Below are positions 1 through 56,853 of a stretch of DNA of 64,000 nucleotides, piece after piece; position 1 is the first letter of the stretch; the number at the start of each line of letters is the position of its first letter. Source of the stretch: Cyanophora paradoxa CCMP329 (lineage: Eukaryota > Plantae > Glaucophyta); assembly GCA_004431415.1 (NCBI GenBank), contig QPMI01000416.1, positions 558,001-622,000 on the forward strand, written 5' to 3'. Under the pieces are notes generated by a model. The model was not told the DNA's origin, did not search any database, and saw only the letters and a list, made by a program, of their open reading frames with translations. Position numbers and translations under genes: made by a program.

Positions 1-74
1 GATTCGAAGCGCGGTTAACGTTCGAATAATAAAAGCGGCGCCGGCCGGCCAGAAACGTAATCGCGAAAATTCAC

Positions 75-726
75 CGTCAAACATGTCGCGGATCTCGGAC
101 TCCGGCTGACACTCCAGGGCCCCTGGGCGCGCCACCCCAGCGTTGCAGACGACGCCGACTCTGCCGCCCTTGGCGGCCGCCTCGAGAACTTCGGGAAGCC
201 CCCGAACGTGCTGCGCGCGCGGCGTGTCGGCACAGAATCGGACCGGAACGGAGAAAGCGGATCCGGAGGGAAAGGCATAGCCGCTGAGCTAGCTAGCTGC
301 ATGCGCGAATTCGAAGGCTGAGGACCTGCTGAGATTTGGCGCGAAATGATTCTTTCGAATTCAGAGACCTATAGCTAGAGCTAGCTAGAGGCCGGCCCGG
401 CGGACCTGCTCATTCGTCACGTCGAGGAGGATGGGCCGGAGCCTGCTAGAGGCGACGCCGCGCCAGCGGTCGGCCGCGGCGTCGAGCTCGCTCGTGTCGC
501 GGATGCCGGCCAGGACAGTGCACCCGGCCGCGTCGAGCGCGAGCGCCGTCGCCTGGCCGATCCCGCTCGAGCAGCCGGTGACGAGCACCGTGTACGGCTC
601 GAGATTCGAGCGCCGGCCGCCGAGGAACGCCGGCAGCGTGAACGCACGCGCGAACTTCGCGCTCGCCGCTTGAGCGTTGAGTCGGCGGCTGCCAGCGCGC
701 ACGTACGCGTGCATATGCATATGCAT
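75..726 (-). CDS. Short-chain dehydrogenase/reductase, paralogue A (5' part; gene runs off the left edge of the window)
   Basis: Exon 1 (726-406) encodes [11 protein letters not shown] (TGxxxGxG) and LLDVT. After a GT-AG intron, exon 2 (210-75) encodes HVRGLPEVLEAAAKGGRVGVVCNAGVARPGPLECQPESEIRDMFD (NAG motif), followed by a GT donor at 74. Start codon uncertain. Confidence 0.8.
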
Positions 727-2610
727 GTCGCAAGCCCGACGGTCTCGGAACGTTGACACCCGCACAGTGCGACACTATATGGCCAAAGCTTCTCAGACTG
801 CAGCTATATACTATGATAGCTAGCTATAGGCCCAGCCCAGCCTGGCAGCTGCAATGCACGGAGTTAGATGCCTAGCTAGCTAAGCTAGATAGCTATAGGT
901 CAGCCTGGCAGGCCCTGATGCGTATATATACGTGAACGGTGTATGTATACCGTAGTACTACGGTACGTGGGCTGGTATACGTGTATACGTATAAGTATAC
1001 GTAAACTTGTGAGCGTCGCGAATTCGAAGCTGCCGGGCCGCGCGCGCGCGCTGCCCTACGTATATACTGATGCTCACGGCTAGCCTAGCTATAGCAGCGC
1101 TCAGCGCGCCGCCTGCCGTGCTGTGCTTCCGCGCCTTAAGCTTAAACTCCCGGAAGGTCCCCCCCCCCGCGCGCGCGCCGCTGTACATGTGCGCGCTTAT
1201 CGATATCGATGCGCGTGTACGGGTACTAGCTATAGGCTACAACTGGTACTAGCTCGAACTAAGCCTCGAAGCATCATGCATGCGTGCCATGCATGATGCA
1301 TGATCATGATTCATGATGCAGTCTCATGCAGAGCCGATCTAAGCTCGAGCCGTCGTGAGGCTTGTCGCCAAGCCTGGCAATTGCAAGTCGGCTCTGCTTC
1401 GAGGCTCCTAGGATCCTGGGAGTATGCCCGGCACCTGCGGCAGCCAAAAAAGCGTCCGGCTCCGCGAGACGTACTTGAAGTGTAAAAATTAAAATTTCTG
1501 CTTTGTTTTGGCTGCCGCAGGTGCCGGGCATACTCCCAGGATCCTAGGAGCCTCGAAGCAGAGCCGACTTGCAATTGCCAGGCTTGGCGACAAGCCTCAC
1601 GACGGCTCGAGCTTAGATCGGCTCTGCATGAGACTGCATCATGAATCATGATCATGCATGGCACGCATGCTTCGAGCTAGTACCAGTTGTAGCCTATAGC
1701 TAGTACCCGTACACGCGCATCGATATCGTCGATAAGCGCGCACATGTACAGCGGCGCGCGCGCGGGGGACCTTCCGGGAGCTTAAGCTTAAGGCGCGGAA
1801 GCACAGCACGGCAGGCGGCGCGCTGAGCGCTGCTATAGCTAGGCTAGCCGTGAGCATCAGTATATACGTAGGGCAGCGCGCGCGCGCGGCCCGGCAGCTT
1901 CGAATTCGCGACGCTCACAAGTTTACGTATACTTATACGTATACACGTATACCAGCCCACGTACCGTAGTACTACGGTATACATACACCGTTCACGTATA
2001 TATACGCATCAGGGCCTGCCAGGCTAACCTATAGCTATCTAGCTATAGCTATAGCTAGCTAGGCATCTAACTCCGTGCATTGCAGCTGCCAGGCTGGGCT
2101 GGGCCTATAGCTAGCTATCATAGTATATAGCTGCAGTCTGAGAAGCTTTGGCCATATAGTGTCGCACTGTGCGGGTGTCAACGTTCCGAGACCGTCGGGC
2201 TTGCGACATGCATATGCATATGCACGCGTACGTGCGCGCTGGCAGCCGCCGACTCAACGCTCAAGCGGCGAGCGCGAAGTTCGCGCGTGCGTTCACGCTG
2301 CCGGCGTTCCTCGGCGGCCGGCGCTCGAATCTCGAGCCGTACACGGTGCTCGTCACCGGCTGCTCGAGCGGGATCGGCCAGGCGACGGCGCTCGCCCTCC
2401 TCCAAGCCGGCTTCGATGTCCTCGCCGGCGTTCGGAAGCAAGCAGACGCGGAGCGGCTCCAAGCCCGCACAGGGGCCTCAAGCTCGGATGCTCCGCGGCC
2501 GCGCCTCCGCCCCATCCTCCTCGACGTGACGAATGAGCAGGTCCGCCGGGCCGGCCTCTAGCTAGCTCTAGCTATAGGTCTCTGAATTCGAAAGAATTAT
2601 TTCGCGCCAA
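336..2610. repeat. Long near-perfect inverted repeat (arms about 336-1449 and 1506-2610, 56-bp spacer)
   Basis: The arms are reverse complements with a few small indels, except for one diverged coding island (about 436-540 vs 2395-2510). Confidence 0.95.
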
Positions 2611-3852
2611 GTCTTATTTCGTGCATGCGCAGCACGTCAGGGAGCTGCCCGAGAAGGTCGGGGAGGCGGCCGCCGGCAGGCGGGTGGGTATCGTTAACAA
2701 TGCCGGCGTGGGATGGTGCGCCTCGGGCCCGGCCGCCGGCCCCTGAGGCCCTTCGCCAGCTTTAGATTTCCTTGCAATTGGCCCTTGATGAATTTATAAT
2801 TAACCCCTCGAGCTCCCATCAGGTTTGGTCCGCTGGAGATGCAGCCAATGTCCGAAATTCGGCACATGTTCGACGGTGCCAGCCAGGCTTGAATTGAATT
2901 AAGGCTACCCCGAAGTAAAGCTTACAATTAATTATATAAACTCGTTCGCAGTTAACGTCTTCGGGGTCATTTCGGTGACTCAGGCGCTGCTGCCGATGAT
3001 CCGCAGCACGCGCGGGCGCGTCGTCCTCGTCGGATCCAGTGCGCTTTGGAGCTTATAATTAATCGCAGAGCTGCAGAGAAAATATTCTTCTACATGCACA
3101 CTGACCGCAAATTCGCGTGCCTGGTTCTTGCAGTCAGAGGATTTCTGTCGGTTGATTTCAGCGGCGGCTACGCGGTGCGTCGGACGCTCGGCCGGGGGGC
3201 CTAGCTGTAGCTGTAGGCCTAGCCTGTAGCTGACCGTCGGGCACGAGGCCTCCAAAAGCATGGCGCGAGCTCTGGCGTCGCGTCTGTGCCAGGGCTTATA
3301 TAGACCTAGGCTAGCTATCTAAATATTATAGGTCTGCCGCGGGGCCGGGTCTTTAACAGGAAGCTGGTGCACAGGCGACGAAATACGCCGTGGAAGCGAT
3401 CGGTGACAGCTTGCGGCGGGAGCTCCGGCCCTTCGGCGTACCCGTCTCCATCATCGAGCCCGTGCGAACGCAGAGCTCTTCCTTCGGATGGCAATTGATT
3501 CGAAGGCATCCGACGCGCGAGCGCAGGCCTTCACGCAGTCTCATATGACCGACGAGCAGCACGTGAATGACTCTTACCGTAAGGTACAAGCCCAGCTGTG
3601 CCCCCGGGCCCCGAATTTTTCGCGATATTCATCAGAACGGGCGCATGCGCAGGCCGTGAGCCGGAGCGGGCCCTACGAGGAGTCCCTAAGGCGGAACTGG
3701 ACGATGTGCAGGCAAGGAATGGCGCGGGCCGCTCCAGCCTCGCTGGTCGCGGAATCTGTGCTGCAAGCTCTGACTTCACCCGAGCCAAGAGACAGGCACG
3801 CGCGTCTACGAATATATATATATAGCCACCGCTTCATCATCGCTTTTTGAAT

Positions 3853-3946
<94 letters not shown>

Positions 3947-4144
3947 GCGCTCTCCCCTTCGCTTTTGAATCACATATTGCGAGGCAGGTATCGCGTGGGC
4001 GCCGGGTTCTCCGCCGAGCGGGCGGCGTGGCTCGCTCGCCTGCCCGCCTCCATCGTAGACAAGATTTTAGCGGACGACCTACAAAGCTTCGAGCCATATG
4101 AAGAAAGCACCGGTACCGGTGAAGATGGTTATTCGACGAAATAA
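2208..4144 (+). CDS. Short-chain dehydrogenase/reductase, paralogue B (retinol/17beta-HSD-like), about 9 exons
   Basis: The spliced product contains [20 protein letters not shown], catalytic YAATK (split by the intron at 3175-3373), [16 protein letters not shown] and PRDRYRVG. Stop TAA at 4142-4144. Confidence 0.88.
3856..3943. repeat. (TA)n microsatellite in the last SDR-B intron
   Basis: About 44 uninterrupted TA units. Confidence 0.97.
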
Positions 4145-5275
4145 GTAGTTCGAATTCATATAAGAGATCTCGCTTCTTAAATAATTATTGAATGTAAAAG
4201 ATCAGGACGCGTCTCTGTTTTAATGTAATTGCATTTAAAGGATTACAAGCGCATGTACATTTCCACGCCCCGAAAGCAATCGCGAGCATCGCTGCGCACA
4301 AATGTGAACAAACGAACTTCGGAATATATATATAAGATGCTTAAGATTCTATAACATGCTATATCATGCCGGGGCATAAAAACCTAGCCGCTGAGCTATT
4401 TTAATATCTGCCGCGGGGCCCCGGGGCCGGGTCTTATGAAGAAAGCACCGGCACCGGTGAACATGTACACGGTTTTTCCATGAAATAAGTAACAATATAA
4501 CAGATGTCGCTTCTTACATAATTATTGAATGTAAAAGATCAGGAGCGGCTCTTTTTGAATGCAAAGGATTATAATTACATGCGCGCGTATCAGTATGCAT
4601 GAGGCACAATAAATCGAATTCCCGTTCCCGTCGTGCATTAATGGACGGCCCTCAAGAATATCTTCTAGCGTGCATTTGGAAGCGTTGCGGAAAATTCCCC
4701 CTGCCCAAGCTTGGCTCACGATCACGCAAATGTACATGTATTTGGGGCAGAAAGCGTACTACGGTAGAAATCGCAATCACAATACGTAGAAATAAATTAT
4801 AGATAAGGGAGTACGCGAACCAGAGGATGAAACTAAGGGAAGCTTGGTTGTAAGATCTAGAGAGAGCTTTAGCTACAGCGATATAGAAGACAGCTTACAA
4901 TTGATTATAAGATAGCGAAACGGAAAGTCCAAATACAATTAAGATCTAATGTAAACGAAACTACGGGACTGTAGCTACGCCGCTCGCGTTTGCAAGTGCT
5001 GCAAGATTCCACGCCCGCGCAGCGATGAAGCAACAGGCGGCTGCAGTCTCCAGTTTGCTCCGCACTCGCGATCGTGTGGTCGCGGGACTGGCACGGGATC
5101 AACGCCGTCGACGTCGGCTGGAGCGCGCGCATCGCCGAGAAACAACGCCTCGAAAACAGCGACACCAGCCTCTGCACAGAGCTCGAAGAATTTCTCGTAC
5201 AGAAGGCGCTCTGTGTGCGCCCTCGGCGTAAGCTTAAGCTTAATTATAAGCTTCGATTTCGGGAATTAATGCAGG

Positions 5276-7332
5276 CTAGAGCTCCAATTGCAAGGCCGGA
5301 TCCGGAGCGACGCGCGCGCGCGTACCAGCTGCAGGGTCACCCTTTGCGTCGCCGCGAGCGCGTGCGCCCCGAGTGTTGACGTTGGTGTCGCGTGCGCATG
5401 CAGAGTCGCCTTGGGGCGCGGCCTTGGTGAGCTTGGTCTTCTGATTGGGCTTCTTCCGATCCTTGAGCGTGCCGAGATAGAAGAGAGCGCCGTTCCACGC
5501 CCCCAAAGCGAGCATCGCTGCGCACAAATATTAATGCGAACAAACGCACTTCGGAATTGCAAATTGAGAGGTTGAAAATGCGTGCGCTCACACAAGAGGA
5601 ACAGCAGATGCAAGTAGTAGAATCGGAAGAAGAGAAAGCCGGGAATAATGCAGAGAACTTCGCGATCGGCGAGTTTGTCGTCAGAACGAAATCGAATCCA
5701 TCACGCGAAAAGCAATATTAATGCGGGCACGGCGGATGGCGTACCAGTGTAGGAGAACTGAACCGACATGAACGCCGTATTCATTGCGCCGGTTCCCTTC
5801 GCCGCATACGACAGGCACCCGCTCCCAACGCGTGTCTATGTAATTCTTCGGTAAGAGAGATACAGAACGGCTGGAGAGCTAGCGCTGGGGCGTTGGACGA
5901 ACACGAGAGTCAAAGGCGTGCAGACGGAACGAGGTCATGATGCTCGGATCCCGCTCCAGCTTGGCCCTGTCCAGGACCTCGGTTTTCAGGAGGTAGAGGC
6001 CTTGCCAGGCGCAGTACACCGCCACCGGCAGGACGATTGCGGCTGCGCATGCGCCCCATCGTGTCAGCCCGCTGCAGCTGCCGCGCCCCGGCCCGGCCCG
6101 CCTCGAGATACGCTTAAATTCGAAACAAGTATTGTGCGCTTGGCTCCGTGCACCATGGAAAGAGAGCCAGCCGCCATCACCTGCGGCGCTCTCCACCGCA
6201 AAGCCGGCAGGCGTGAACCAGCGGAGGCAGAAAGTCACTACACACGGCGTATTTCAGGCGATCGTAAAACCAAATGCAAGCTACGGCGGAAAGGGCGGGG
6301 GCGGAGCGAACCGAGCGGTGGGAAAGCGTGAACGAATAGTGTCGTCATCTTCTCGATGTCGTGGAAAATGAGCGAATTCCTGCACCTTCGCAAAGGGTCA
6401 GCTTTTCGTTCACGAATTCGCACTAAATTGTATAAAGATCAGAAACTTCGCACGATGGAATCGCGATCGCCAGCGGACCATTGATGCAGACGAAAAGGGT
6501 CTGCAGTTACTATTACCGTAGTACAGGGGCCGATCATCGATTATTCTTGAGGAGTGGGGCTTACCTGAAAAAGCAGCGGGCTGCGGGGCATGCAGTAGAT
6601 ATTGAGCAGCAAGAGAGCTTGTATAAAGTAGCAATAATCCTGCATATCGCATCATGATCATGTTAAGTCTTCGCGTCGATTTATCGCCGCGGAAAAAAAC
6701 AATCTTTAAAAAACCAGCCGCGGCGCACAATCAGGAAATAGAGCCCTGCGCGACAGAAGCAGATATCAGCATTATATTACGTTTAAATTAAAGCATCCTG
6801 GAAGCGGATACGCACATTTCCGAGAACGGTAGTCGATGAACCGCATCGTCATTAACTGTGAGCAAGGAATTAAATCGAAAAAAGAAGGTTAAGGAAGCCG
6901 AGAAGATATTAGCATTAGCCGCGGGTTTCGATTCGGGAAGTGTTGCGCACGACGCCGAACGAGACAGTGTACCACCGGAAGAAGCTGGACGGCTCATGCA
7001 CCAGGATGAACTCGGATAGGCAGACGAAGACGACGCCCGCCAGGAATTTGATGGCGGCCTGCAGCTGGGCGTGTCCGCCCGAGTTGCTCTTCGAGCTCCT
7101 CGCACGCGCGCGCTCAGCCCATTGTTGCTGCGAAATTCATTTCATGATCGTGTTCGTCTTTTGAAATTTCGCGCTGACGGCGCGCGCGCCCAGGCCCACG
7201 CGGGCTGACCCTTTCAGCCAGCTGGAGGCCCAGATGAGCGTGTGCCAGGTGTGCAGGCGCATGTGCTCTTTTCCCCTTCGAGTTCCCCTCGCTTTTTCCC
7301 TCGCGATCGGCCCTGCATTCCTCCACCTGCAT
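5276..7332 (-). CDS. GPC1: Glycerophosphocholine acyltransferase (GPC1/GPCAT, DUF2838 family), copy 1, multi-exon
   Basis: Spliced motifs MRFIDYRSRK-WLYFLI-DYCYF, NGPLAIAI, RNSLIFHDIEKMTTLFVHAFPP, WQGLYLLKTE, DPSIMTSFR and WNGALFYL match remembered GPC1 family motifs. Many hydrophobic segments. Confidence 0.8.
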
Positions 7333-7999
7333 GCGCGAAAGCGTTGTCAGCGGCTCGAATGAAACTGCGAATCTTCTGCAAGCTCGAGATTTGTAGAGGC
7401 GGACCGTTACTGGTATGTATATGTGCTTGAATGCACATGCGCGGATCGGGATCATGCACGTGCACGCCAGCCCACTCATAATATCAGCAATTGCGCTACC
7501 AACAACAATGATATCATGATCGATATCAAAACAATCTTGATCATGATGCAGACCTTCGTCTGTCGAACTCACTCCGTCTCGCATGTGCATCATGAATATG
7601 CATGCGCACCGCTGAATGATCAGGGACGTGATCGCACGATGGCTTGACAACCTCGCAGAACGATACCGAATTGCGCGAAAGGCCTGCAGGGGCCATGATC
7701 GTCGCTCAATTGCAAGAGCCTTGCGCGGCGATATAGTAGCCTATTTGGTCGACTATAGCTAGTACGTATACTGTCACATGTACAGTGTGCCCAGCTGCAG
7801 CCCTATATACTATCATATATATATATAGCTGCTACGTATACCGTACAGACGGCCGCGGTATACGTACTACGCCGTAGTACGGTCCAACTCTAGGCGCCGC
7901 TAGCCTACTACCTAGTAGTAGGCTACTAGTAGCTATAGGCGCCGCTACGTCTGCTACCAGTAGCTGGCTCTAAGCTGAGTATTATCTGCTGACTCCGTA

Positions 8000-8244
8000 C
8001 TGTAAACGTAGGAATCTTCGACAGCGTCTTTATTTCGTCTATATTCGTCAGACCCGAGCTTTGATCATGATGAATATTTGATGCTCTTGAACTGAATTTT
8101 TGTATGGAGAGGGGTACTAAGGGCTGACTCTTCTATGGCGGAGTCGCGGGGCTGACGAAAATATGATGCTGTCGAACCATATTTTCGTCAAGATTTTCAG
8201 GTTTTGTCGAAATTAAGTCTCGACGAACTTTCCTACGTTTACAG
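8000..8244. mobile_element. MITE, Tc1/mariner-type (TA target duplication)
   Basis: Perfect 15-bp TIR CTGTAAACGTAGGAA...TTCCTACGTTTACAG with TA on both sides; internal TTCGTC/GACGAA subterminal repeats. Confidence 0.85.
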
Positions 8245-8323
8245 TATTAGAGTCCGTAATGAGTCCGCAATGACTCCGTAATGACGCCATTACGGCGCGT
8301 CCGACGGTCATCCACTCGTCGTA

Positions 8324-8565
8324 CCGTAAAACACTTAATTATATAATTAAATATAATTAATGCGCCAGATATTAATGCGCGTTTTTGGACTCGGACCCCT
8401 AATATAAACTATTAATGCAGCATGATCATGAAATTAATGCGTTTTGCAGCTTTTTGGCTGCGTTAGGGGGGTACATACAGCGGCCTCTTATTAATGCGCC
8501 CCAAATCAATGCGTTTTGCCAGCGGAATGCGTATTAATTTGCCAAGTTGGGGGCACATTTAACGG
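8324..8565. mobile_element. Probable MITE with CCGT termini (Tc2-like), TA-flanked
   Basis: TA-CCGTAAAA...TTTAACGG-TA (7/8 TIR match); AT-rich with repeated ATTAATGCG. Confidence 0.55.
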
Positions 8566-8805
8566 TAGTAACGGTACCACACGGATCCGTAAGGGGGTAA
8601 AAAGGCTATCATAGTATGGCCCCACGGCCCCTACGGGCCCTACCCAGGTAGAGGTCAAGGTACCGTAGTACGCGTCTCGCCGAGTCGAGCTCACGGTCTA
8701 GCATATGCATTATAATGCATATGCATGCGCACGGTCTACTAGGCTAGGGCCAAACTAGGGGTCCCCAAGGTCGCTCGGAGTCGACGTCTAGATCTTTGCA
8801 AAGTT

Positions 8806-9032
8806 GGGGTCATTTCGGTGACGCAGGCTAGCTATAGGATTTCTCTCGCGATCGGTTGATTTCGAATTCAGCGCTAGCGGCGGCTACGCAGTGCGTCGGG
8901 CGCCCTCGCGGCCGGCCGCGGGGCTTAGCTATAGCTGTCAGTGTAGGCCTGGCCTAGCTATAGGCCTGTCGCTGACCGTCGGCTACGAGGCTTCTAAAAG
9001 CATGGCTCGAGCTCTCAGAGTCTAGCGTCGCG
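8806..9032 (+). pseudogene. Decayed SDR fragment (start of exon 4, exon 5, intron 5), resuming at about 10594-10611
   Basis: Aligns to SDR-B 2963-2984 and 3138-3283. The exon-6 start CAGGCGACGAAGTACGCC reappears near 10594. Carries deletions and many small insertions. Confidence 0.8.
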
Positions 9033-9087
9033 CCGGCGGCGCCGCCGGGCCGCGTAGTGGCCCGGCCGCGATTTTCGCGCCGGGGGG

Positions 9088-10564
9088 GCAAGGGGGGAAC
9101 TGGCCGCGGGATCTAACGAAAGAGTCCTAGTGGCGCGCACATGCGCGCGGCAGAAGTTGCCGCAGGTCGAAGGTTAAAGATAAACACAGATTATGATTGG
9201 AAAAATAGAAAAGGCCCGATGACTCCGGCGATGAGCACACGCTGCGATGGAAATCGAATATTTAATAAAAAAAGAGTAAATGAAAGGACAGACTCGAGCT
9301 CAGCGCACACTATTGGAAAGATTGTTCTGGAGCCAAAAAACGCTCCGCATCATGATCAACTCTCTTCGCACGGCGCCGGCCTACCGCTAAGCCTGAACAG
9401 CTGGCTAAAAGATGATGGTGCTGTCTGCAGAGGGCTCGTCGTAGATGTAGTCGATCCAGGCCTTCTGGAGGGGATCGGGGCGGAAGTCGACCTTGGGGGT
9501 GAGCGGCAGCCACTGGGCCAGCGGCGCCGGTCCTGAAGAGAGCCGTCTTGCAAGAGCATGGTGAGGCGGCCCGCCGCCTCGAGCGCCCGCAGCCTGGCAG
9601 AGCCGCGCGGCTGGCGCGCTGCTCGCTCCCGCCGCGCATCTGGTAGACAAGGTCTTGAATTTCGACGTCCGCGAGGCTGGCGGCGCGCAGGCGCTCCACG
9701 ACCCCCTCGTGGAGGTCCTCGATCGATGTCGCAGGCCCGCATCATGAACAGACATCAGCTATGGGCGATGCACTTCAATATCAATCAAACTGCGCGCACC
9801 CGACAAAGCGAACGACGAAGCGATCCTGCCGCCCAGCCGCGAGTGCGTCGACGGTCGCTAAAGCGAAGGCGACGGCTTGCTCGCGCATGGGGGGGAAGCC
9901 AGCCCAGTCGGGGAGCTCGCGGACGAGAATGAGCAGCGGCTTCACCGCTTGCGCCGCACGCGCTCCGTCCGCGTTGCAATTGTTGCAATTGGCCGCGCTC
10001 CGGATCCGCGCGCGCGCAGCACGATCGCGAGTGCCGGGCAGCTGCAGCGTGCTCGGCTGCGGGCAGCGGCGCGCGCCTCGATCCGGTTCTGCGGTGCAAG
10101 CTCGATGCATGCAGTCGAGCGTAGTCCAGGCGGCACGCGTACCGTGCGGCGTACGCGGCGCAGTGCGAGGAAGCCGAAATCTAGAGGAGACAGCTAGGGA
10201 GAAGTGCTTGCCATGCAAAACCGCCGCATGCATGCGCATATGCATATGACGCAGCGCACCGCCGCGCGAGCGAGAGCCCAGATCTAGATCTAGAGGAGTG
10301 ATCATGAGAGCGAAGTTGGTTCAACGGTTTTTTTCCCCTCGAAAACCAGTTTTCGCGAGTTCGAGAGAGCTCTCGCGAGCTTGACTTTGACGCTCGAAAG
10401 TCGAAGGCTGACCGGTCCACCGAGCCAGTCGGAACGCGAATAAGCCCCATTTTTTCCCGTGTTGCATACTGGCCCTCGGAAACGGCCTCATAGAAAAATT
10501 TTGCCTGAAGCGAGGGAACGGGAAGCAAGCTGGGAGAAGCCCTTCGGTCTTCTTCCCCCCTTGC
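9088..10564. mobile_element. Insertion bounded by 12-bp inverted repeats, carrying a degenerate minus-strand gene fragment
   Basis: GCAAGGGGGGAA (9088) and TTCCCCCCTTGC (10564); sits inside the SDR pseudogene intron; no clear TSD. Confidence 0.45.
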
Positions 10565-11604
10565 AATATACGCGCATGACCGATATCCGCGCGCAGGCGA
10601 CGAAGTACGCCTAATTATATATATATATATATATAAGATGCTTAAGATTCTATAACATGCTATATCATGCCGGGGCCTAAAAAGCTAGCCGCTGAACTAT
10701 TTTAATATCTGCCGCGGGGCCCCGGGGCCGGGTCTTATGAAGAAAGCACCGGCACCGGTGAACATGTACACGGTTATTCCCTGAAATAAGTAACAATATA
10801 ACAGATGTCGCTTCTACATATATAATTATTGAATGTAAAAGATCAGGAGCGGCTCTTTTTGAATGCAAAGGATTATAATTACATGCGCCGCGGCGCGTGT
10901 ATCAGCTGCAGTATGCATGAGGCACAATAAATTACATATTAAATTCGAATTCCCGTTCCCGTCGTGCATTGATGGACGGCCCTCAAGAATATCTTCTAGC
11001 GTGCATTTGGAAGCGTTGCGGAAAATTCCCCCTGCCCAAGCTTGGCTCACGATCACGCAAATGTACATGTATTTGGGGCAGAAAGCGTACTACGGTAGAA
11101 ATCGCAATCACAATACGTAGAAATAAATTATAAATAAGGGATTACGCGAACCAGAGGATGAAACTAAGGGAAGCTTGGTTGTAAGATCTCAGAGTCTAGA
11201 GAGAGCTTTAGCTACAGCGATATAGAAGACAGCTTACAATTGATTATAAGATAGCGAAACGGAAAGTCCAAATACAATTAAGATCTAATGTAAACGAAAC
11301 TACGGGACTGTAGCTACGCCGCTCGCGTTTGCAAGTGCTGCAAGATTCCACGCCCGCGCAGCGATGAAGCAACAGGCGGCTGCAGTCTCCAGTTTGCTCC
11401 GCACTCGCGATCGTGTGGTCGCGGGACTGGCACGGGATCAACGCCGTCGACGTCGGCTGGAGCGCGCGCATCGCCGAGAAACAACGCCTCGAAAACAGCG
11501 ACACCAGCCTCTGCACAGAGCTCGAAGAATTTCTCGTACAGAAGGCGCTCTGCATGCGCCCTCGGCGTAAGCTTAAGCTTAATTATTAGCTTCGATTTCG
11601 GGAA

Positions 11605-13655
11605 TTAATGCAGGCTAGAGCTCCAATTGCAAGGCCGGATCCGGAGCGACGCGCGCGTACCAGGGTCACCCTTTGCGTCGGCGCGTGCGCGTGTGCCCCT
11701 TGTATTGACGTTGGTGTCGCGTGCGCATGCAGAGTCGCCTTGGGACGCGACCTTGGTGAGCTTGGTCTTCTGATTGGGCTTCTTGCGATCCTTGGGCGTG
11801 CCGAGATAGAAGAGAGCGCCGTTCCACGCCCCCAAAGCGAGCATCGCTGCGCACAAATATTAATGCGAACAAACGCACTTCGGAATTGCAAATTGAGAGG
11901 TTGAAAATGCGTGCGCTCACACAAGAGGAACAGCAGATGCAAGTAGTAGAATCGGAAGAAGAGAAAGCCGGGAATGATGCAGAGAACTTCGCAATCGGCG
12001 AGTTTGTCGTCAGAACGAAATCAAATCGATCACGCGAAAAGCAATGTGGGCACGGATGGCGTACCAGTATAGGAGAACTGAATCGACATGAACGCCGTAT
12101 TCATTGCGCCGGCTCCCTTCGCCGCATGCGACAGGCACACGCGCCCAACGCGGGTCTGTGTGATTCTTCGGTAAGAGAGATACAGAACGGCTGGAGAGCT
12201 AGCGCTGGGGCGTTGGACGAACACGAGAGTCAAAGGCGTGCAGACGGAACGAGGTCATGATGCTCGGATCCCGCTCCAGCTTGGCCCTGTCCAGGACCTC
12301 GGTTTTCAGGAGGTAGAGGCCTTGCCAGGCGCAGTACACCGCCACCGGCAGGACGATTGCGGCTGCGCATGCGCCCCATCGTGTCAGCCCGCTGCAGCTG
12401 CCGCGCCCCGGCCCGGCCCGCCTCGAGATACGCTTAAATTCGAAACAAGTATTGTGCGCTTGGCTCCGTGCACCATGGAAAGAGAGCCAGCCGCCATCAC
12501 CTGCGGCGCTCTCCACCGCAAAGCCGGCAGGCGTGAACCAGCGGAGGCAGAAAGTCACTACACACGGCGTATTTCAGGCGATCGTAAAACCAAATGCAAG
12601 CTACGGCGGAAAGGGCGGGGGCGGAGCGAACCGAGCGGTGGGAAAGCGTGAACGAATAGTGTCGTCATCTTCTCGATGTCGTGGAAAACGAGCGAATTCC
12701 TGCACCTTCGCAAAGGGTCAGCTTTTCGTTCACGAATTCGCACTAAATTGTATAAAGATCAGAAACTTCGCACGATGGAATCGCGATCGCCAGCGGACCA
12801 TTGATGCAGACGAAAAGGGTCTGCAGCTACTATTACAGGGGCCGGATCATCGATTATACTTGAGGAGTGGGGCTTACCTGAAAAAGCAGCGGGCTGCGGG
12901 GCATGCAGTAGATATTGAACAGCAAGAGAGCTTGTATAAAGTAGCAATAATCCTGCATATCGCATCATGATCAGACCTCACTTCGACCACGAGTGATTGG
13001 ACGAAATTCGAAGCCGGCCGCGGCGCACGATCAGAAAATAAAGCCCTGCACGACAGATGCAGAATCAGTAAAGTTGATTCGATGAGAGAACATCGTGCAA
13101 ACAGAAACGCAGAAACGCACATTGCCGCGAACGGTAATCAATGAATCGCATCGTCATCAACTGCAGGCGAGGAAAAAGAGGAGGATAGGGAAGCCGAGAA
13201 GATATTAGCATTAGCCGCGGGATATCAATATATCTATATATATTAATTCCGGAAATGTTGCGCACGACGCCGAACGAGACAGTGAACCACCGGAAGAAGC
13301 TGGAGGTCTCATGCACCAGGATGAACTCGGATAGGCAGACGAAGACGACGCCCGCCAGGAATCTGAAGGGAGCCTGGGCGTGTCCGCCGTTGCCGCTCTT
13401 TGAGCTCTTCGCGCGTGCGTGCGCGGCCCACTGTTGCTGCGCGCGAAAATAAATGTGACGATCAGGCTCGATGCTTCGCGCGCGCCCACGCGGTCGTACC
13501 CTCTCGACCAGTTGCAGGCCTAAGTGTGTGTGTGCGTGCGCGTCCGCGTGCTGCAAATGTGGCGCACGGCATGATATCGCGATCGATCCGGATCCACGAT
13601 CGCGGGCGCCTTTCGAATTCCCCTCGAGCTCGGCCCTCCTGTCCTCCGCCTGCAT
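11605..13655 (-). CDS. GPC1: Glycerophosphocholine acyltransferase (GPC1/DUF2838), copy 2
   Basis: Same exon structure and motifs as copy 1. An indel changes the reading frame of the C-terminal tail. Confidence 0.8.
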
Positions 13656-15559
13656 GCGCGAAAGCTTAAGTCCGCTTGAGCTACGTATACACATCCTCTA
13701 CTAATTATAAATAGTGTATATATATATAGTCAGCGGAGTCGGACCGGTGCCGGGAAAGGCGCATGCGCATGCTTGGGTGCGCGGATCGCGATAGATTTCG
13801 GGGTTGGGCCGGTAAATGCGCTGCTCGCACATAAACCCGATCAGCAACGACGTTAACGTTGCCACCGATAACAAAAACAAAAAGTAACGCGGACCGAATT
13901 CTCGCATCATGCACCGCCGAATTCGAATGATCAGGGTCAAGCAGATTATCGCGCAATGGCTTGACAGCCTTGAACGACGACACGGGAAGGCTCGGGGCCA
14001 TGATTAGTCGAGAATCTTGTGCAGCTGGGTACTACGGTAACTTGTTCCCAGACGAGTACTAGTGAGCGCGCGCGCGCAAGATTGCTAATCGAATCGAAAC
14101 CAGAGGCTGTCACAATGTGCTCACTCGCGGCGAGAAGCTTAAGGCGGGCCGCCGGGCCGGGCCCCAAGCTGCAGGGCTGTAGGACCTTTAGGCTGCAGCT
14201 GGCTATCAGCGATGTTGTACCAGCGACCGAGGCACTGAGTCAGTGAGCCTCCTTTCGTCGGCCGGGCAGCGGCAGCGGTCGGCGCGCGGCTGCGGGCCTC
14301 TAGATCTGCAGCTGCAGCTGTCACAGTACTACTAGGCTAGTGCACGTGTGGGGATGCGGCGCTGCGCGCGGCTGCGCGAATACTACGTCGTACACTTATA
14401 TAAACTAGTACTAGTATACTACTAGCCTAGTAGGCTACTAGTAGTGGACCTTACTAGTGGTATACGTAGGCCCAACGGGTGGCAGGCTGGCAGCTGGCAG
14501 CTGCAGGCTGCAGCCTGCACTGGCCCTGCAGGCTGCAGCGGCCCCAACTCAGTGTGACTTGGCCAAGGCCTAGGACCCCAGCCGCCCAGCGGTGGCAGGC
14601 TGCCAGCGGCCCAGCCTCTATCAATATATATATATCCCGGGATTCCCGGCCCGCCGGCCGCGGCCGGGCCCGGCGGGTCCCGAGTCCCGACTCCCGAGTC
14701 CCGACCGTCGGACTCCCGAGTCCCGACTCCCGACTCGGCGAGTCCCGAGAGGGCGGCCCGGGCCGGCGGCCGCGGGAGCCTACCACTGCCTACCAGTATA
14801 TACGTATACGCCGCTACTAGCCTAGTAGGCTACTATACGGTCTATACGCGTACGTATACCGGTACTACGGTAGGCGGCGCCGGCGGTAGCTATAGCGCTA
14901 GTCACAGTAGTGTCGAGTCACTGAGTCACTGTCGACTCACTGTCGAGTCACTGTCGACCGTCGGACAATGCCTTTCATCGATAAATTGATCATGAATCGT
15001 TGCATTTTTTTGCTTGCTACAAGTTCGGCTAGGCTACTAGTAGCTACTTTGCAAACGTGACTCACGAGAACGTTCGAGCCTCGAGCTCGAAAGTCGAGAG
15101 TGGGCTGCGGACTCACCGTTGAACTCCGGATCCGCGGAGCCGGCGCGGAGGCTCGGATCGACTCCTGGGAGCCTTAAGGCCTTGGAGCGAAACTCGGATC
15201 GACTCCTGGGAGCGAACTCCTGCATGCGCAAAGCTCCACACTGTGAGTCTGTGTCGACTCTGTGACAAGCCATACGTGGAATCGTCGTACCGTTACTACC
15301 GTAGTACGCGCGCGTGGATCAGCTTGATCAATGATCAGCCTGCCGGAGACCCGCGGATCCGGAGGCGCCGGCGGCCGACCCGGGCCCCGGACTCCGGGCC
15401 GGGGCCCGGGGCCCGGGAGCCCCGGGAGGGCCGGAGCCTGCCGCAGTGCCGGAGCCTCGGAGGCTGCCGCGCGCAGTGCCGCACTACCGTAGTACCACTA
15501 GTACGCGGCACTACAGTACTGCCGCACTAGCCTAGTAGTACTATAGTAGTAGTCTAGTA

Positions 15560-15770
15560 CTGTAGGAATGCTTAAATTGCCGCGTAGTTAAATTGCCGAA
15601 TTCGACCAAAACCGGAATTGCCGTGGCGAGAAATTGCCGAAACTCTGGATTTCGTCTATGGCACCAGAGAGCCCTACCCCCTGAGAATTGCCGTGGCACA
15701 AAATTGCCGAATTCGGCCTCTCGGCAATTTACGGCAATTTAAAACATCGGCTAAAAAAGCAATCCTACAG
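15560..15770. mobile_element. MITE, TA-flanked, with subterminal repeats
   Basis: TIR CTGTAGGAATGCTT / AAGCAATCCTACAG (13/14). AATTGCCG occurs six times forward and CGGCAATTT twice near the right end. Confidence 0.82.
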
Positions 15771-16715
15771 TACTAGTACTGCGGCACTGCGGCACTGCGG
15801 CCGCCCGCGGCCGGGCAGACCGGTCACCGGGGCACTGCGGCAGTGCCACACTGCAGTGGCAGTGCAGTACTAGACTACTACTAGTGCGCAATGCGCATCA
15901 TGGCATGCGAGCTGCAGCCTGCAGGGCGCCGGCGCCGGCGGTCCGGCGGCGGACTCCCGGAGCTCCGCCGGGGCCCGGCCCGGCCCGGCCCGCCCGGGCC
16001 GATCAGCCTGGCAGGTTGCAACTTGCAACTTGCAAGCCTTGAAGAGGCCGGGCTCCGAGCTCGAGGAGCCGCGGCGCCGGGGCGCCGCGACGTAATATTC
16101 AAGACCCCAAAATAGTTTAGTAATTCCAATTGCAAGGTTCGGCCGGTTTAAAATTTAGTAGGCTGAAAATAATATCAAGAGTTGGCCGCGCCGCCCGCGC
16201 GGCGCCGGCCGCGGAGCGCTTTAATTTAGTAGCGGCCTTTAGCATGGGGTGGGCGCGGGGCGCGCGATTCGGTCGGCGATCGCGAGGAGGGCAGGACTCA
16301 GGAGCAACCCTGCGCGCTTTTGCGCTCTCTTCGGCGGCATGCTTCTCCCGCGCTGCAACTTCGGCTGCGCGGGCTACGTACCCCCCCCACCCCGACCTCG
16401 GGTTTAGTATACGATAAAAGTTAACCTTTTGTAATACCAGCCTTATTACCAGTCGTCCGAGACTCGAGAGTCGAGAGTCGAGAGTCGAGCCAATGAGTTT
16501 GCCTTGAGGCTCCAAGGAGGGCCGACGGCTAGCAGCGCACATGTCAGGCTATTCCAACGTTCCGAACTTGGAGTTCAGCTGCAGAATCAGTGCAGATATC
16601 GCTCCCGCGGCCGAGGTTCATCCAGTCTTACCGAAGTCTCTCTCTCGTTCTCAGAGTCACTCTCACACACACACACCTTCTCTCTCCCCACGTTCAAGTT
16701 CGCCTCACCACCATC

Positions 16716-24249: not shown

Positions 24250-25665
24250 GCACGCGAGCTAGTACTGCGTGTACTACGAGCTCACAGACTCTTCTGAGAG
24301 CATGCATGCCGCCGGGCCGGATCGCCCAGCGCCGGGCCAGCGGAGATTTTCCTGTGGGCCGGCGCCGGCGCGCCGCCAGAGGAAATTTGCCTCTGGAGGG
24401 GGGTACGGTGTCCGGACCCAGAGGAAAATTTCCTCTGGATCAGAGGAAATTTGCCTCTGCCAGGGGGGTACACCCGTGCGTTGAGGCAGCGCGCCTTCTC
24501 GATCTTGCCTGCAGCTGTCTGCGCCTGGAAGATGCGCTCGATTTGGTACCAGTAGGCTCAGGAGACGAGCTTCCCGTGGTGCGGAAAGCTCGTGCTCGTT
24601 GCTGGAGTTCTCGAGTGACGTATAGCTATAGTGGCGCAGATCCAGCGCTCGGCGCGGCTGTTGCGACTGGCTTTCCACGAGCCTCTGAGAAGCTTGCAGG
24701 CTTCAGCCGCGCAGCTCCCGCTCGCGCGCGGCCTACGCTTCGGGACTTCGGACACCGGCGCGCTTCATCGCAGTGCCCAGTTACGTGTGTGCCACCAGGC
24801 AGCTAACACGCCCCTCTCGCTTCCCGTGCCTGCAGCCCTGCAGCCTGTCACGTTCTGCAGGATGCATATATATGGCGTGGGGCGGGCGGCTCACGGGCGG
24901 CAGCGGTCTTCACGCATGCAAGCATCCGGCAAAGAGCATCGATGGTCGCGCCGCGGGCAGGGCCGTCAGGCGGGCGTCAGCTGCAGCTGCGAATGCACGC
25001 ACGCCCTTCTGCAGCCGCCCGCCGCCGGCGCTCCCTGCGGTGGCGCAGAAACAGGCGGCGGCGGCGGCGCTCTTCCGAACAGCGAGCGAGCGGACTCGGC
25101 GGGGGCCGCACGCGCCCCTCCGCTTGGAGCTCTGCGCGGCGTCCGTGGCTCGCAGCTGCCCGCGGTGCGGTCGCCACCGGAGTCATCGGGCAAGCAAGGC
25201 GGCGGCGGCAGACGGCGGCCTTGGCGCCCCCACCGGTGCTCCCCGCGCCCGCCCTTCCATCCCCCCCAGAGCCCACCCGGGCCTCCTCCGGCCTCCTCCC
25301 CGCCAGGGCGCCCGCCTCTTTAGGCCAAGAATCCAGACCCGCCCCGGCCCCTCTCTTCCCCCGCCCCCTCCTCGCCCTCCCCCCTCCTCCCCCGGCTCCC
25401 CCTCCGACCCCCCGCCCCCTCCCCCAGACCCGCCCCGGCCCCCGGGCCCCTCACTTTCTCGCCCCGCTCCGCCCTGCTCCCCTCCCTTCCCCGCCCCGCC
25501 AGGCCGCCCGGCGCCGCCCCGTCCCCAATATTCAGGGTGACCCGCCCCGCCCCCCGGCCCCTCACCCCCTCGCTCCGCCCCGCTCCGCCCTGGTGCCCCG
25601 CCCCGCCCCCTCCCTTCCGGATCCCCTGGCCCCGCTTTCCCCCGCCCCGCCCGGCGCCGCCCCGC
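24250..25665 (-). repeat. Modular GC-rich dispersed repeat, copy A
   Basis: Reverse complement of parts of 54690-55590 and 57970-58850; 25225-25365 is the reverse complement of 39560-39695. Confidence 0.85.
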
Positions 25666-39394: not shown

Positions 39395-41418
39395 CTATAG
39401 AGGAGGGGAAGGAGAGGACGGGGGGAGAGAGGGGGGCGTGGGGCAGCAGGGCGGAGCGGGGCGGGGCGAGGGAGCGAGGGGCCCGGGAGGGGGGCCGGAG
39501 GAAGGGGAGGAGGGGGCGGGAGGGGCGAGGGGGGGGGGGGGGAGCCAGGAGAGGGAGGGGGAAGAGAGGGGGCCGGGGCGGGTCTGGATTCTTGGCCGGA
39601 GGAGGCCGGCGCCCTGGCGGGGAGGAGGCCGGAGGAGGCCCGGGCGGGCTCTGGGGGATGGAGGGGCGGGCGCGGGGAGCGCCGGTGGGGGCGTCAAGGC
39701 CGCTTGGGGCGTGGGAGATACCAGGGTAGCTGGCGGCCGCCGCTGAGGCGTGCGGAGTCAGCGCCCGAAGCCTGGCCCCGGAGAGCAGACGCGGCGCCGG
39801 CGCCGGCACGCGCACGGCACGAATCGGTCCTGGCCTTGCAATTGACGCCTCGCCCTGACGCCGGCGGCGGGCCGGGGCTGCCCTGCCAGGCTGAACGCGG
39901 TCAAGGCCGGGCGGCCGGGCGCGCGGGGCAAGGCCGGCCGGGCTGGACGGGGCGCCGGGCCGCGAGCTCGAGCCCGGCCGCTGGGGGGCAGAGGGGCGAG
40001 GCGCCGAGTGGGGGGCCGGGCCCTCCCCGCGGATGGACGGCGGGGCCGGGGCCGGGGCGGTGCGGTGCCCCTGCGCCCCGCGGCGCGAGGCGCGAGGCGC
40101 GATGGACGGGGCGGGCCGGCGGGCGCGTGGAGGCCGCGGGGGGGACCCTGGTGAGGAGGCGAGTCTCGAGGAGGGAGGAGGCGTGGTAGGCGGGGAGCCG
40201 GCGGCGGGCGCCGGCGTCGCACAGCGCGGGCGCGGGCGGCACTTCGGAGCTTCGGACTCTAAGAGCTGCGCTCGCCGGCGCGCGCCGTGCGCCGCGGCGG
40301 CGCCCGCCCGCCGCCCGTCGACGCCGGCGGGGAAAAAGGTCGAGAAAAGGTCGGACAGGGGACCCGGGGAGTTCAGCTGCGCTTCCCGCGGCCGCCGCGC
40401 GGGGCTTCGGTTCAGGGCTCCGCGACGGGGCCGGCCGGCCGCCGGCGGCCGTAGCACCGCGGCGGCCAGGTCGCATCCGCGGCCTCCTCCGCGCTGCCGC
40501 CTCGAGCTCGGCGGCGCCGCCCCGCAGGCGCCGCGCAGCGCCGCGAGGCGCGGGGCGGGCGGGGCCCGGGGTGCGCAAGACGCCGGAGCGCGGCCCTCTC
40601 GGCTTCGTCCTCCGCGGCCCCGCCTTGCCCGGTCGGCCCCCTCCGCGCTCCTCTCCGCCTGCGGGGAGCGCCGCATCAGCGCGGGCCGGGCGGGCAAGCC
40701 TCGAAGAGGCCGGCGGAGCACCCGGGGCCAAGCGCACCCGCTGCAGAAGCGCGTCGCTGCGCCCGGCGTCCCTGTACACGTCGACGTCAGCGTCGGCGCC
40801 CCGGCCCACGCACGGGCATCCCGCGGCGCCGCGCAACGTGCACCCGCTTGTTGCCGATCGTGCACGGCCGGGCATTGGAGTGGAACAGCACAGCGACTGA
40901 ACCTGCAATCACGCGAGCGACTCACGTCCTCCCGGCGCGCGCGGCCACGGCGCGGAGCCGCGAGCGCTGCGGAACGAGGCCGGGCGCTTGCGAGCAACAC
41001 AGAGCGCGCCCTGAGAATGAGCGCCTCCACAGCTGGCCATGGGCGTCGAGTGTTGTAAGCGTGGCGCCGGCACGGTGTGTGCGCATCGCCGGCGATGCTC
41101 CTCGCTGCACGGGAACGCTCAAGCCCGTGGGGTTGAGAACTAGTACTCGCAGGGAGAAGCCGGACGCACCGTCATCGGCAGTGCTCCCAAGAGGCCCTCC
41201 GCTTGCTGCCGCGCAAGCTAGCAGCCCGCCATACGCTGCGATCCAGCTGCTGTGCAAGCCAGCAGCTGCAGTGGCCCGCCCGGCGCGGCTTGGTCAACGT
41301 CCCCACCAAAGCGCCCTACCCCGTAATAGCGTTGCCAACTGGCCTACAGGAAAACCTGCAGGGCCAGTGCAGGCCTGCAGGTTTTCCTGCAGGCCAGTTG
41401 GCAACGGCAAGAAAATTC
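39395..41418. repeat. Modular GC-rich dispersed repeat, copy B, ending in a T-shaped hairpin
   Basis: Shares modules with copies A, C, D and E; palindrome at 41331-41405 followed by GGCAAGAAAATTC. Confidence 0.85.
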
Positions 41419-47494: not shown

Positions 47495-48790
47495 GAATTT
47501 TCTTGCCGTTGCCAACTGGCCTGCAGGTTTTCCTGCAGGCCTGCAGGATTTCCTGCAGGCCAGTTGGCAACGCCAGGCGTCGCCAGCGCGGGCCGGGGCC
47601 CGGGGTAGGGCGCTTCGGAGAGAACTGGGGACGCCGATCAAGGCGTGCCGGGCGGGCCGCTGGCTTGCACAGCAGCAGGGCCGCAGCATCGGGTGGGCTG
47701 CTAGCTTGCGCAGCAGCAAGCGAAGGCCAGGCCTGCAGGCCTCGTTAGAGCACTGGTGATGACGGTGTGTGCATGCGGCTTCTCGCCACCGGCGAGTACT
47801 AGCTCTCTTGAGCCTACGGTCGAGTGAGCGTTCCTTACGGACCACGTGCAGCGAGGAGCATCGCCAGCGATGCGCATACGCCGTCCCGGCGCGCGCGCGC
47901 GACGCAAACAACACACGACGCCCATGGCCATGGCCAGCTGTCGAGGCGCTCATTATCAGGGCGCGCTCTGTGTTGCTCGCAAGCGCCCGACCTCGTTCCG
48001 CAGCGCTCGCGGCTCCGCGCCGTGGCCGCGCGCGCGCGCGCGCCGGGAGGACGTGAGTCGCTCGTGTGATTGCAGGTTCAGTCGCCGTGCACGATCGGCA
48101 ACAAGCGGGCGCGTTTGTGCACGTTGCGCCTCGCCGCGGGATGCATACTCTCGTGCGTGGGCTGGGACGCCGACATCGACGGCGACGCCGCGCGCAGCGG
48201 CACTGCCTCAACGGGGGCGCGGGGCGCTGGACGCCGTGGGGGCGCAGCGACGCGCTTCTGCAGCGGGTGCGCTTGGCCCCGGGTGCTCCGCCGGCCTCTT
48301 CGAGGCTTGCCCCCCCGGTCCGCGCTGACGCGGCGCTCCCCGCAGGCGGAGAGGAGGCCGACCGGGCAAAAGGCGGGGCCGCGGAGGGCGAAGCCGGCGC
48401 GCTCCGGCGCCTGGCGCCCCCGGGGCCCGGCCCGCCCCGCGCCTCACGGGGCTGCGCGGGCATCGCAGGCGGCGGCCGGGCGCCTGCGGGCGATGCCGCC
48501 GAGTCGAGGCGGCAGCGCGGACGAGGCGGCCGATGCGACCCGGCCGCTCCGCTCGGCTCGGCTCGGCAGCGGAGGCCTGCGGCCGCGACGCTACGACGGA
48601 GGCCTGCGGCGCGGCGGCCGCGGGGAGCGCAAGGCGGGAGAAGGCGGGAGAGCGGCCGGTGGCGGCTGCGGCGGTGGGGCGGGCGAGGAGCCGGAAGAGC
48701 GGGTGCTGGTGCAGGGGGGCGAGCGCGGCCCCGGCCTGCCGGCGCCCTCCCTTCCCTTTCCGGCGGCGACGCCGGCCCCGGCGGCGCAGC
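47495..48790. repeat. Modular GC-rich dispersed repeat, copy C (inverted relative to copy B)
   Basis: Reverse complement of about 40430-41418, including the terminal hairpin at 47508-47571. Right boundary approximate. Confidence 0.88.
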
Positions 48791-53677: not shown

Positions 53678-56465
53678 CACGCCGCTTCGTGCTGCGGGGC
53701 TGACCGATGGAGGGGACGGGGGGGATGGGGGATGCCATGGTAGAGCGGGTTGGGCAGGGCAGGGCGGGGCGGGGGAAAGCGGGGCCGGCGGGGCGGGGGA
53801 AAGCAGGATCGGAGGAAGGGAGGGGGCGGAGCGGGGAAGCGGGCCGGGCCGGGCCGGTTCTGAGAAGAGCCTTGGCGGGAGGGGCCCGGGGGGCGGGGCG
53901 GGTCTGGGGGAGGGGGAAGAGAGAGGGGGCCGGGGCGGGTCTGGCCATGGGGGAGGGGCCGGAGGAAGCCCCGAGGAAGAGGGGGCGGGAGGCCCCGCCC
54001 CGGGCGAGCGCAGAGGCAGCGGCCGCCGCGGGTCGCCGTCGCCGTCCGACGGATGCCGCGGCGATCGCGGCGCGCCCCTCTGATCTGAGGCTCTGAGGCT
54101 CAGGCACCGACACGGCGGAAGGCGGGCGTGGGGGGCGCACCGAAGAGGCTCCCCACTGAGTCCCCAGTGCCGCGGGCGCCGGAGACCGGTGCTGGAAGCG
54201 CCGGTGCGGACGCCGAGACCGCTCAGGGCGTGTGAGAGGCACGGGTCGGCGGGCGGCCGCCGCTGAGGCGGGCGGGATCAGCGCTCGAAGCCCAGCCTCG
54301 GAGGGCAGAGGCGGCGCCGGCGCCGGCAGGCGCACAGCACGAATCGGTCTCCGCCTCGAGGGGCCGGCGCCGGCATCGGCCTTGGCGCCCGCTGCCGGGC
54401 TGCGCGGAGGCGGGAGGTCAGCGCACGCCGGGCGCACGCGGCGCCGCGCCCCGCGAACAAACCCGGAGGAGCGGGAGTGCTGCCCCGCCGCGGCGCCTCA
54501 ACGACGGAAGGCGCCCCGGCGACGGAGGGCCGCCTCTCTGCTACGGCTCCGCCGGACGCGGCGGCTCGCGGGCGGCCGCGGGCCCCGAGAAGGGCGCGCG
54601 CTGCGGCCGGCGTTCAGCGCGTCGGGCCACCGGCCGCCGGCCGCCTCTCCACCGCGACTCCGATCCCCGCCGCAGCGACCCTCGCCGTCTGCCGCCGCCG
54701 CCTTGCTTGCCCGAAGACTCCGGTGGCGACCACACCGCGGGCAGCTGCGAGCCAGAGCCACGGACGCTGTGCAGAGCTCCAAGCGGTGGGGCGCGTGTGG
54801 CCCCCGCCGAGTCCGCTCGCTCGCTGTTCGGAAGAGCCCCGCCGCCGCGCGCCGGGCGGCTGCAGAAGGGGGTGCATGCGCGGCTGCAGCTGACGCTCGC
54901 CTGACGGCCCTGCCCGCCGCGCAAGCGACCATCGATGCTCTTTGCCGGATGCTTGCCTGCGTGAAGACCGCTGCCGCCCGTGAGCCGCCCGCCCCACGCG
55001 TACGCCTACGCCTAATGCATCCTGCACAACGTCACAGGCTGCAGGGCTGCAGGCACGGGAAGCGAGATGGGCGTGTTAGCTGCCAGGTAGCGCACACGTA
55101 ACTGGGCACCGCGACGAAGCGCGCCGGTGTCTCGAAGTCCCGAAGCGTAGGCCGCGCGCGAGCGGGATCTGCGCGGCTGAAGCCTGCAAGCTTTTCATGA
55201 TCAGAGGCTCGTGGGAAGCCGGTCGCAACAGCCGCGTCGAGCGCTGAGTCTGCGCCACTACACGTCACTCGAGAACTCCAGCATCGAGCACAAGCTTTCC
55301 GCACCGCGGGAAGCTCGCCTCCCGAGCCTACTGGTACCAAATCGAACGCATCTTGCAGGCGCAGATCTAGACAGCTGCAGGCAAGATCGAGAAGGCACGC
55401 TGCGACGCACGGGTGTACCCCCCCTGCCAGAGGCAAATTTCCTCTGATCCAGAGGAAATTTTCCTCTGGGCCCGGGCACTGTACCCCCCTCCAGAGGCAA
55501 ATTTCCTCTGGCGGCGCGCCGGCCCACAGGAAAATCTCCTCTGGGCGATCCGGCATGCACGCTCTCGTAGTACACGCAGTACTAGCTCGATTGCGACGCT
55601 CGCGGCCTTCGGGGAGTGCAGCTGGAGCTTCGCAGACGGTCGCGTTTGGCCGCGTGAACGAACGTGAGCGGCCTGCAGCTTCACAGCAGTCGCTCGATCA
55701 ATCCGCGTGGCGACCTCGCGTTCGCGGGGCGCGCCGCGGCCGCGGCCGGCCCGGCCGCGCGCGGGACCGGCCGTCTGCGGGGCCGCGGAGTGCAGCGGGA
55801 ATCCAGTTCGGCTCCTTCGGCCTTCGCCAAGCTTTTAGCTAAGGCGGGGAGCGCCTTGCGATCGGTGCGGCACGCAACGTCCGCTTTTCCTCTTGCAGGG
55901 CATCTGCACGTGCACCGATCTGGCGCTTACACGAGTGCCCGCAGAACGAGACGCTGCGGGCGGGCACGAGGCGCTGCCGCCAATTGATGCTCCTGATCAG
56001 CTGAGAAAGAAACGCCTGCATGTGAGCGCTTCTCTCGATCTGGGGTGCGAAAAGCCAAGCCGCGCGCCTCCGAACTCTGACTCACTGACTTGGCCATGGG
56101 CGCAGCTCGAACGCGCGCGCTCGCGTCGCAACAGCAGAAGCGGCGCAGCGGGCCCGCGGCCCGCAGCTCCTCGGGCGCCCGGGCCCGTGCATTACGGCTC
56201 GCACCTGAGGCCACGGCCAGGAGCTCGAGCTCGCCTATCGAGAGAGATCCGGTGCGGCCGCCTGCCCCGCACACGTACGTTCCCCGCCCGAGCGTCCCGC
56301 CGATGCCGCCCGCGCAGTCGCCGGGCCGCGCTGTAAGACGCGCTTCGCCGCATGCCTCCCCCTCGAGCTCCACGTACGGATTCCGGCCTGCAGCACTTCG
56401 AGAGTCGTCCGCAGGCGCGCGGGGCCTCAGGTGCAGCACGGCGCCTTGAAGCTTGCTTCTCGTTC
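53678..56465 (+). repeat. Modular GC-rich repeat, copy D
   Basis: Direct repeat of 56854-59688. Confidence 0.9.
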
Positions 56466-56853
56466 CGAAGATTTGAGAGACGCGCGCGCCCGCACGCTCC
56501 GCTACGGTGCGCCCGCTGGAGCCCGCGGCTGCTCCTGATCAGCTGCAGGGGCCAGCGGCGGCCGGGAGCTCGAGGGCGGCCGGGCGGCGCATGCGCAGTG
56601 CCGCTGCACGCGCAGTCCAGCGGACATGTTCCTCGTTGTATACGGTCAGAAGCACCTAGCTCGCCCATCGATATCCGATTGCTGAATTCGAATCGATGTT
56701 AATTCATACAAAAGGCTACGGTGGCCGCCCAGGCTATAGATCTAGAGACTCTAGCTACCGTGGTTCCATGCCCACCTTTCATTTGCTGCGAGGGATCTGC
56801 AACTGGGCGACGTTGGCCGCAGGGCCCGTCGGGTGCCGAGCCAGCGCAGCACG

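Follow-up and report, generated by a model that had tools for sequence, protein, structure and literature searches.

In the 64-kb window analysed here, two genes are arranged head to head and point outwards from a large palindrome, and each arm of the palindrome contains the beginning of one of them, from its upstream region through exon 1 to nucleotide 70 of intron 1. A previous sequence-only reading had placed this palindrome at positions 336-2610 and given its spacer as 56 bp. A repeat search together with an alignment of the arms gave exactly these values; the palindrome has 2,275 bp, and the spacer, which is unique sequence, lies at 1450-1505. Palindrome, spacer and the divergent island described below were delimited by global alignment of the left against the right arm, with the spacer at the centre of symmetry. 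Blastn and tblastn searches of the 64-kb window with every exon, the two islands, one arm and the spacer revealed neither a third copy of the gene nor a further copy of the arms.

Exon 1 is an open reading frame in both arms (726-406 on the reverse strand for the left gene, 2208-2540 on the forward strand for the right gene) that starts with MHMHMHAYV and ends with LDVTNEQ immediately before a GT donor. Its first 62 codons (541-726 on the reverse strand, 2208-2393 on the forward strand) are the same in all codons of the two copies; they encode a 45-aa N-terminal extension, strand betaA and, after betaA, the Gly-rich cofactor motif TGCSSGIG. Both exon 1 products exceed the gathering score of 26.6 for the Pfam family adh_short (PF00106), the left one with 34.9 and the right one with 33.3 bits, and both align to solved structures as ordinary N-terminal halves of short-chain dehydrogenases/reductases (SDRs). 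By these features we assign the two genes to the classical SDR family. Searches against NCBIfam with single exons returned generic 'SDR family oxidoreductase' models alone, all far under their cut-offs. Exon 1 of the right gene (117 aa), used in a word search, found one distant SDR fragment, P0001, at 46% identity and no sequence from Cyanophora paradoxa; the open reading frame containing exons 7 and 8 of the right gene had no match, and neither word search returned transcript evidence for either gene. Both genes start with (ATGCAT)x3 (709-726 and 2208-2225), a self-complementary hexamer repeat encoding MHMHMH. Ahead of the Rossmann fold there are 45 residues with many Arg, Ala and Ser and with the first acidic residue at position 43, a composition that would suit an organelle-targeting presequence.

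The right gene comprises eight exons on the forward strand, exon 1 being followed by exons 2-8 at 2633-2715, 2823-2875, 2952-3038, 3134-3174, 3375-3461, 3527-3583 and 3653-3850. Every intron is of the GT-AG type, and the summed exon lengths predict a protein of ∼312 aa. These exons were read by eye, and the searches were made exon by exon. Exons 4 and 6 match adh_short more weakly, each at the part of the profile where it should fall, and the predicted product has NNAG, a Ser 13 residues ahead of a Tyr and a Y-A-A-T-K motif spanning the exon 5/6 junction. For the left gene the window holds exons 1 and 2 alone, the remainder lying past the left window edge. Exon 2 (75-210 on the reverse strand, HVRGLPEV...EIRDMFD) has its acceptor AG at 212-211 and its donor GT at 74-73 and contains CNAG; the catalytic exons of this gene are outside the window. 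Intron 1 of the left gene covers 211-405 on the reverse strand, and of its 195 nt the first 70 (336-405) alone belong to the palindrome. Among the seven donors of the right gene (2541, 2716, 2876, 3039, 3175, 3462 and 3584), five start with GTGC (GTGCGCC, GTGCCAG, GTGCGCT, GTGCGTC and GTGCGAA), an unusually uniform word, and two of its acceptors have GCATGCGCAG in common.

The arms are nearly identical over most of their length. Nested repeat searches resolve them into four inverted pairs, with 100% identity at 1296-1449 / 1506-1659, 99% at 883-1163 / 1764-2044, 97% at 500-882 / 2052-2434 and 97% at 332-441 / 2505-2614; the 154 bp flanking the spacer on either side show no difference at all between the arms. 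Alignment of the inner arms (541-1449 against 1506-2393) revealed two substitutions, at 901 and 1146, in 878 aligned columns, and five indels of 7, 5, 3, 19 and 7 bp at 883, 1159, 1201, 1259 and 1289 (left-arm coordinates). All five indels fall within low-complexity or self-complementary words (TAGCTA units, a C5/C10 run, CGA and CATG units). None of the five conformed to a six-base rule of the form X-revcomp(X)-X. The non-coding parts of the inner arms, 727-1449 on the left and its mirror image 1506-2207 on the right, are common to both genes and are presumably their 5' UTR and promoter. The outer repeats (336-435 on the reverse strand and 2511-2610 on the forward strand) consist of the final 30 nt of exon 1, that is its last 10 codons, which on the right extend to 2540, plus exactly 70 nt of intron 1. 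They contain 1 mismatch in 100 bp, at 348. Substitution density in the outer repeat (1/91) was not significantly different from that in the inner arms (2/878, p = 0.26), so that a different time of conversion for the outer patch cannot be claimed.

Folded as single-stranded DNA, the palindrome centre reaches a predicted -230 kcal/mol (z = -40 against shuffled sequences), which is far beyond chance. If this centre were ever transcribed through, a long double-stranded RNA would result. At 1374-1580, Rfam lists solely sub-threshold look-alikes of plant miRNA precursors, with MIR841 reaching 92 of the 200 bits that its gathering score demands; we rejected a miRNA precursor, as these matches most likely reflect no more than the shape of a long perfect hairpin.

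Within exon 1 the identity of the arms is broken by one stretch of coding sequence. It had been reported as an in-frame island, and so it is, with 105 nt in the left gene (436-540, reverse strand) and 117 nt in the right gene (2394-2510, forward strand); the peptides cited for it agree with the translations of the open reading frames. Blastn of one island against the other finds no match, and a forced alignment gives ∼58% nucleotide identity with the length difference of 12 nt. Alignment to solved SDRs places the island over the end of alphaB, betaB and alphaC, in accordance with the proposal that it covers the betaB-alphaC part of the Rossmann fold. The right island aligns with the FabG structure 6nrp (AGFDVTVHARSRQAEAEQV) and the left island (LDAAGCTVLAGIRDTSELDAAADRWRGVASSRLR) with structure 9pvq, and both look like working SDR sequence. 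In classical SDRs an Arg directly after betaB accompanies NADP(H) binding. This Arg is kept in both islands (VRK in the right, IRD in the left), hence there is no sign of a cofactor switch, and a change of cofactor between the two is not evident from the residues. The main difference lies in helix alphaC and in a loop that is four residues longer in the right copy. The island does not end abruptly on either side: its borders fade out through silent differences, which lie at alignment codons 63, 68, 100 and 102, as would be expected of the ends of homologous exchange tracts.

To compare the age of the different parts, we restricted the comparison to positions with an identical amino acid in the two copies, counted the codons that differ there and applied the Fisher test. 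In the island 9 of the 16 codons at conserved residues differ, and in exons 2/3 this holds for 18 of 29. In the rest of exon 1, comprising the 62 codons before and the 10 codons after the island, not a single one of 72 codons differs. Silent divergence of the island is therefore clearly distinct from that of its exon 1 flanks (p = 2e-8), and it is not distinguishable from that of the gene body (p = 0.76). The second exons are diverged, as had been noted from the letters, with 63-67% nucleotide and ∼65% amino-acid identity. Outside the palindrome intron 1 is unalignable, and its total length is 195 nt in the left gene against 92 nt in the right gene. The right gene has a 107-nt intron (2716-2822) that splits a Trp codon after NNAGVG, a place where coding is continuous in the left gene; the intron after MFD-G agrees in position and phase in both. 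Judged by this divergence, the two SDR genes are old paralogues. Since silent divergence is saturated in the island, equal to that of the gene body and zero in the flanks, the island would be old and the flanks would have been homogenised recently. Silent sites therefore give island and gene bodies the same age, and the remainder of 336-2610 was made identical recently.

The arrangement of the gene pair, the geometry of the arms and the mosaic of old and young parts can be read directly from the DNA, and from them we infer both gene conversion as the process and the reasons why the island escaped it. In our opinion the locus probably represents an old head-to-head pair of SDR paralogues whose 5' module was homogenised by intrachromosomal gene conversion, with one old patch escaping. 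Arm-to-arm conversion that leaves an island had been one of two explanations offered by the sequence-only reading, and it is the one that the silent sites (9/16 in the island and 18/29 in the gene body against 0/72 in the flanks) speak for. Homologous repair between the inverted copies would have overwritten the shared 5' module, possibly repeatedly. Upstream of the start codon this module would measure ∼720 bp; in exon 1 it would cover codons 1-62 and the final 10 codons, and it would reach 70 nt into intron 1. Both genes would thereby have come to share one upstream region and one N-terminal extension. The betaB-alphaC stretch of 105/117 nt would not have been overwritten and would have retained its original divergence. 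Since a single conversion tract is normally continuous, the identical 100-bp patch beyond the island would have to come from a further event or from a tract with gaps, or else selection would have to be involved. It might be possible that tracts were discontinuous or separate, strand exchange being hindered by the ∼58% identity and the 12-nt length difference of the islands. Another possibility would be that converted variants arose and were removed by selection.

Gene conversion is well documented for head-to-head paralogues (PMC3966223) and for palindromes (PMC8327919, PMC8600007). The inverted hsp16-1/hsp16-48 modules of C. elegans and adjacent inverted hsp70 pairs lie head to head and are kept alike by conversion (PMC3966223). 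Like these pairs, the SDR genes are divergently oriented adjacent paralogues whose partial near-identity would stem from interlocus conversion and not from a recent duplication (PMC3966223). Unlike them, the SDR pair is homogenised in its 5' module alone (upstream region, most of exon 1 and the start of intron 1), divergence of its gene bodies is saturated, and inside the converted stretch one old patch remains. The palindrome also resembles those of primate sex chromosomes, which have arms of >99% identity, a unique spacer and gene pairs in the arms (PMC8327919, PMC8600007), and in which recombination between the arms can invert the centre (PMC8327919). However, primate arms measure from 10 kb to 1.5 Mb and those of the SDR palindrome 1.1 kb, the host of the latter is a probably haploid alga, and the SDR arms end within genes, so that each arm represents the head of a gene alone. 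SIGLEC11/SIGLEC16 offer a similar case, in which the 5' part (there the N-terminal domains) is homogenised and the rest of the genes is different (PMC5701461). That pair belongs to another gene family and another organism. The SDR locus appears as a clean and small case in which conversion between inverted duplicates would give two diverged enzymes one upstream region and one N-terminal extension, and in which an old functional patch survives within the converted 5' module. Taken alone, it leaves existing knowledge of gene conversion and of SDRs unchanged.

The other explanation of the sequence-only reading was an inversion that joins each exon 1 to the other gene body. Geometrically this holds. 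The outer repeats are an inverted pair with 99% identity, and a crossover between them would turn 436-2510 around and exchange the islands between the gene bodies; frame and splicing would be kept, since codons and GT donor do not differ between the two repeats. With inverted repeats around alternative coding segments that inversion would re-pair in frame, the locus is similar to bacterial shufflons and other invertible switches. In those bacterial systems inversion is the work of a dedicated site-specific recombinase that acts at short specific sites, and a culture contains the two orientations side by side. The outer repeats of the SDR palindrome, in contrast, are plain homology (an exon end and an intron start) with no recognisable site, and the locus is known in one orientation, from one assembly. 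Moreover, homology amounts to ∼900 bp on the spacer side of the island and to 100 bp on its outer side, hence most crossovers between the arms would flip the silent centre alone. The silent divergence of the island matches that of its own gene body, which suits simple retention, and with the Arg after betaB kept in both islands a functional gain from a swap is not clear. It is known that the arms of a palindrome can recombine and thereby invert the intervening DNA, and in about half of the primate X palindromes the orientation of the spacer differs between species (PMC8327919). An inversion event may therefore have happened at the SDR locus in the past. That the 2.1-kb segment is flipped at an appreciable rate, with cells alternating between two enzyme pairs, we consider very unlikely. 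We would give hardly any credence to an occasional, reversible inversion that swaps the betaB-alphaC module, such that a clonal culture would harbour both configurations and up to four isoenzymes. If it were true, the locus would correspond to a bacterial shufflon, but one that resides in a nucleus and is driven by homology.

The mosaic could also have arisen in the reverse order, if the 5' module had been homogenised as a whole and ∼110 nt of one copy had then been rewritten by ectopic conversion from a third SDR. Short ectopic tracts of ∼100 bp are common, and one long plus one short tract would explain the identity on either side of the island. The right island is close to VRKQADADRL of the unrelated fragment P0001, a similarity that shows family-typical sequence only. 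A third SDR copy is, however, absent from the 64-kb window, and the equal divergence of island and gene bodies, which is expected under retention, would be a coincidence here. A patch from a third paralogue accounts for the island less parsimoniously, and we regard it as unlikely. An artefact of assembly or polishing, either a fold-back chimera or a wrong join of dispersed paralogues, seems very improbable to us. Palindromic chimeras do occur in long-read assemblies, and the present one is an early build made with Canu 1.0 / Quiver. A fold-back chimera, however, would yield identical arms without distinct flanks, whereas the arms observed here differ by an in-frame coding island and five indels and are flanked by distinct genes that both look intact. 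The sequence of the spacer is unique and presumably unlike the PacBio hairpin adapter. The contig continues for at least 38 kb to the left of the palindrome and 61 kb to its right, which makes a contig-end artefact unlikely, and an inverted junction cannot arise from an overlap mis-join. The assembly of Cyanophora paradoxa, a probably haploid genome in 712 contigs, was made with Canu and Quiver from PacBio RSII data with inserts of ∼15 kb (PMC6704402), so that reads would span the 2.3-kb palindrome.

Further repeats were noted in the rest of the window. An (AT)n microsatellite of 91 bp (3853-3943) immediately follows the right gene's stop codon, and behind it a unit of ∼120 bp occurs at 4090-4207 and again at 4428-4544, with 337-bp spacing and 87-94% identity. 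A dispersed inverted-repeat family links 24362-25452 with 54683-58791 and 39427-39657, and a second one links 40552-41289 with 47633-48356 and 59845-60277. In both families pieces of 60-250 nt share 75-99% identity; probably they are transposon remnants or multi-copy genes. The window also shows a step in composition, G+C being 51-62% in 1-16000, where the SDR pair lies, against 60-79%, mostly ∼70% or more, in 18000-64000.
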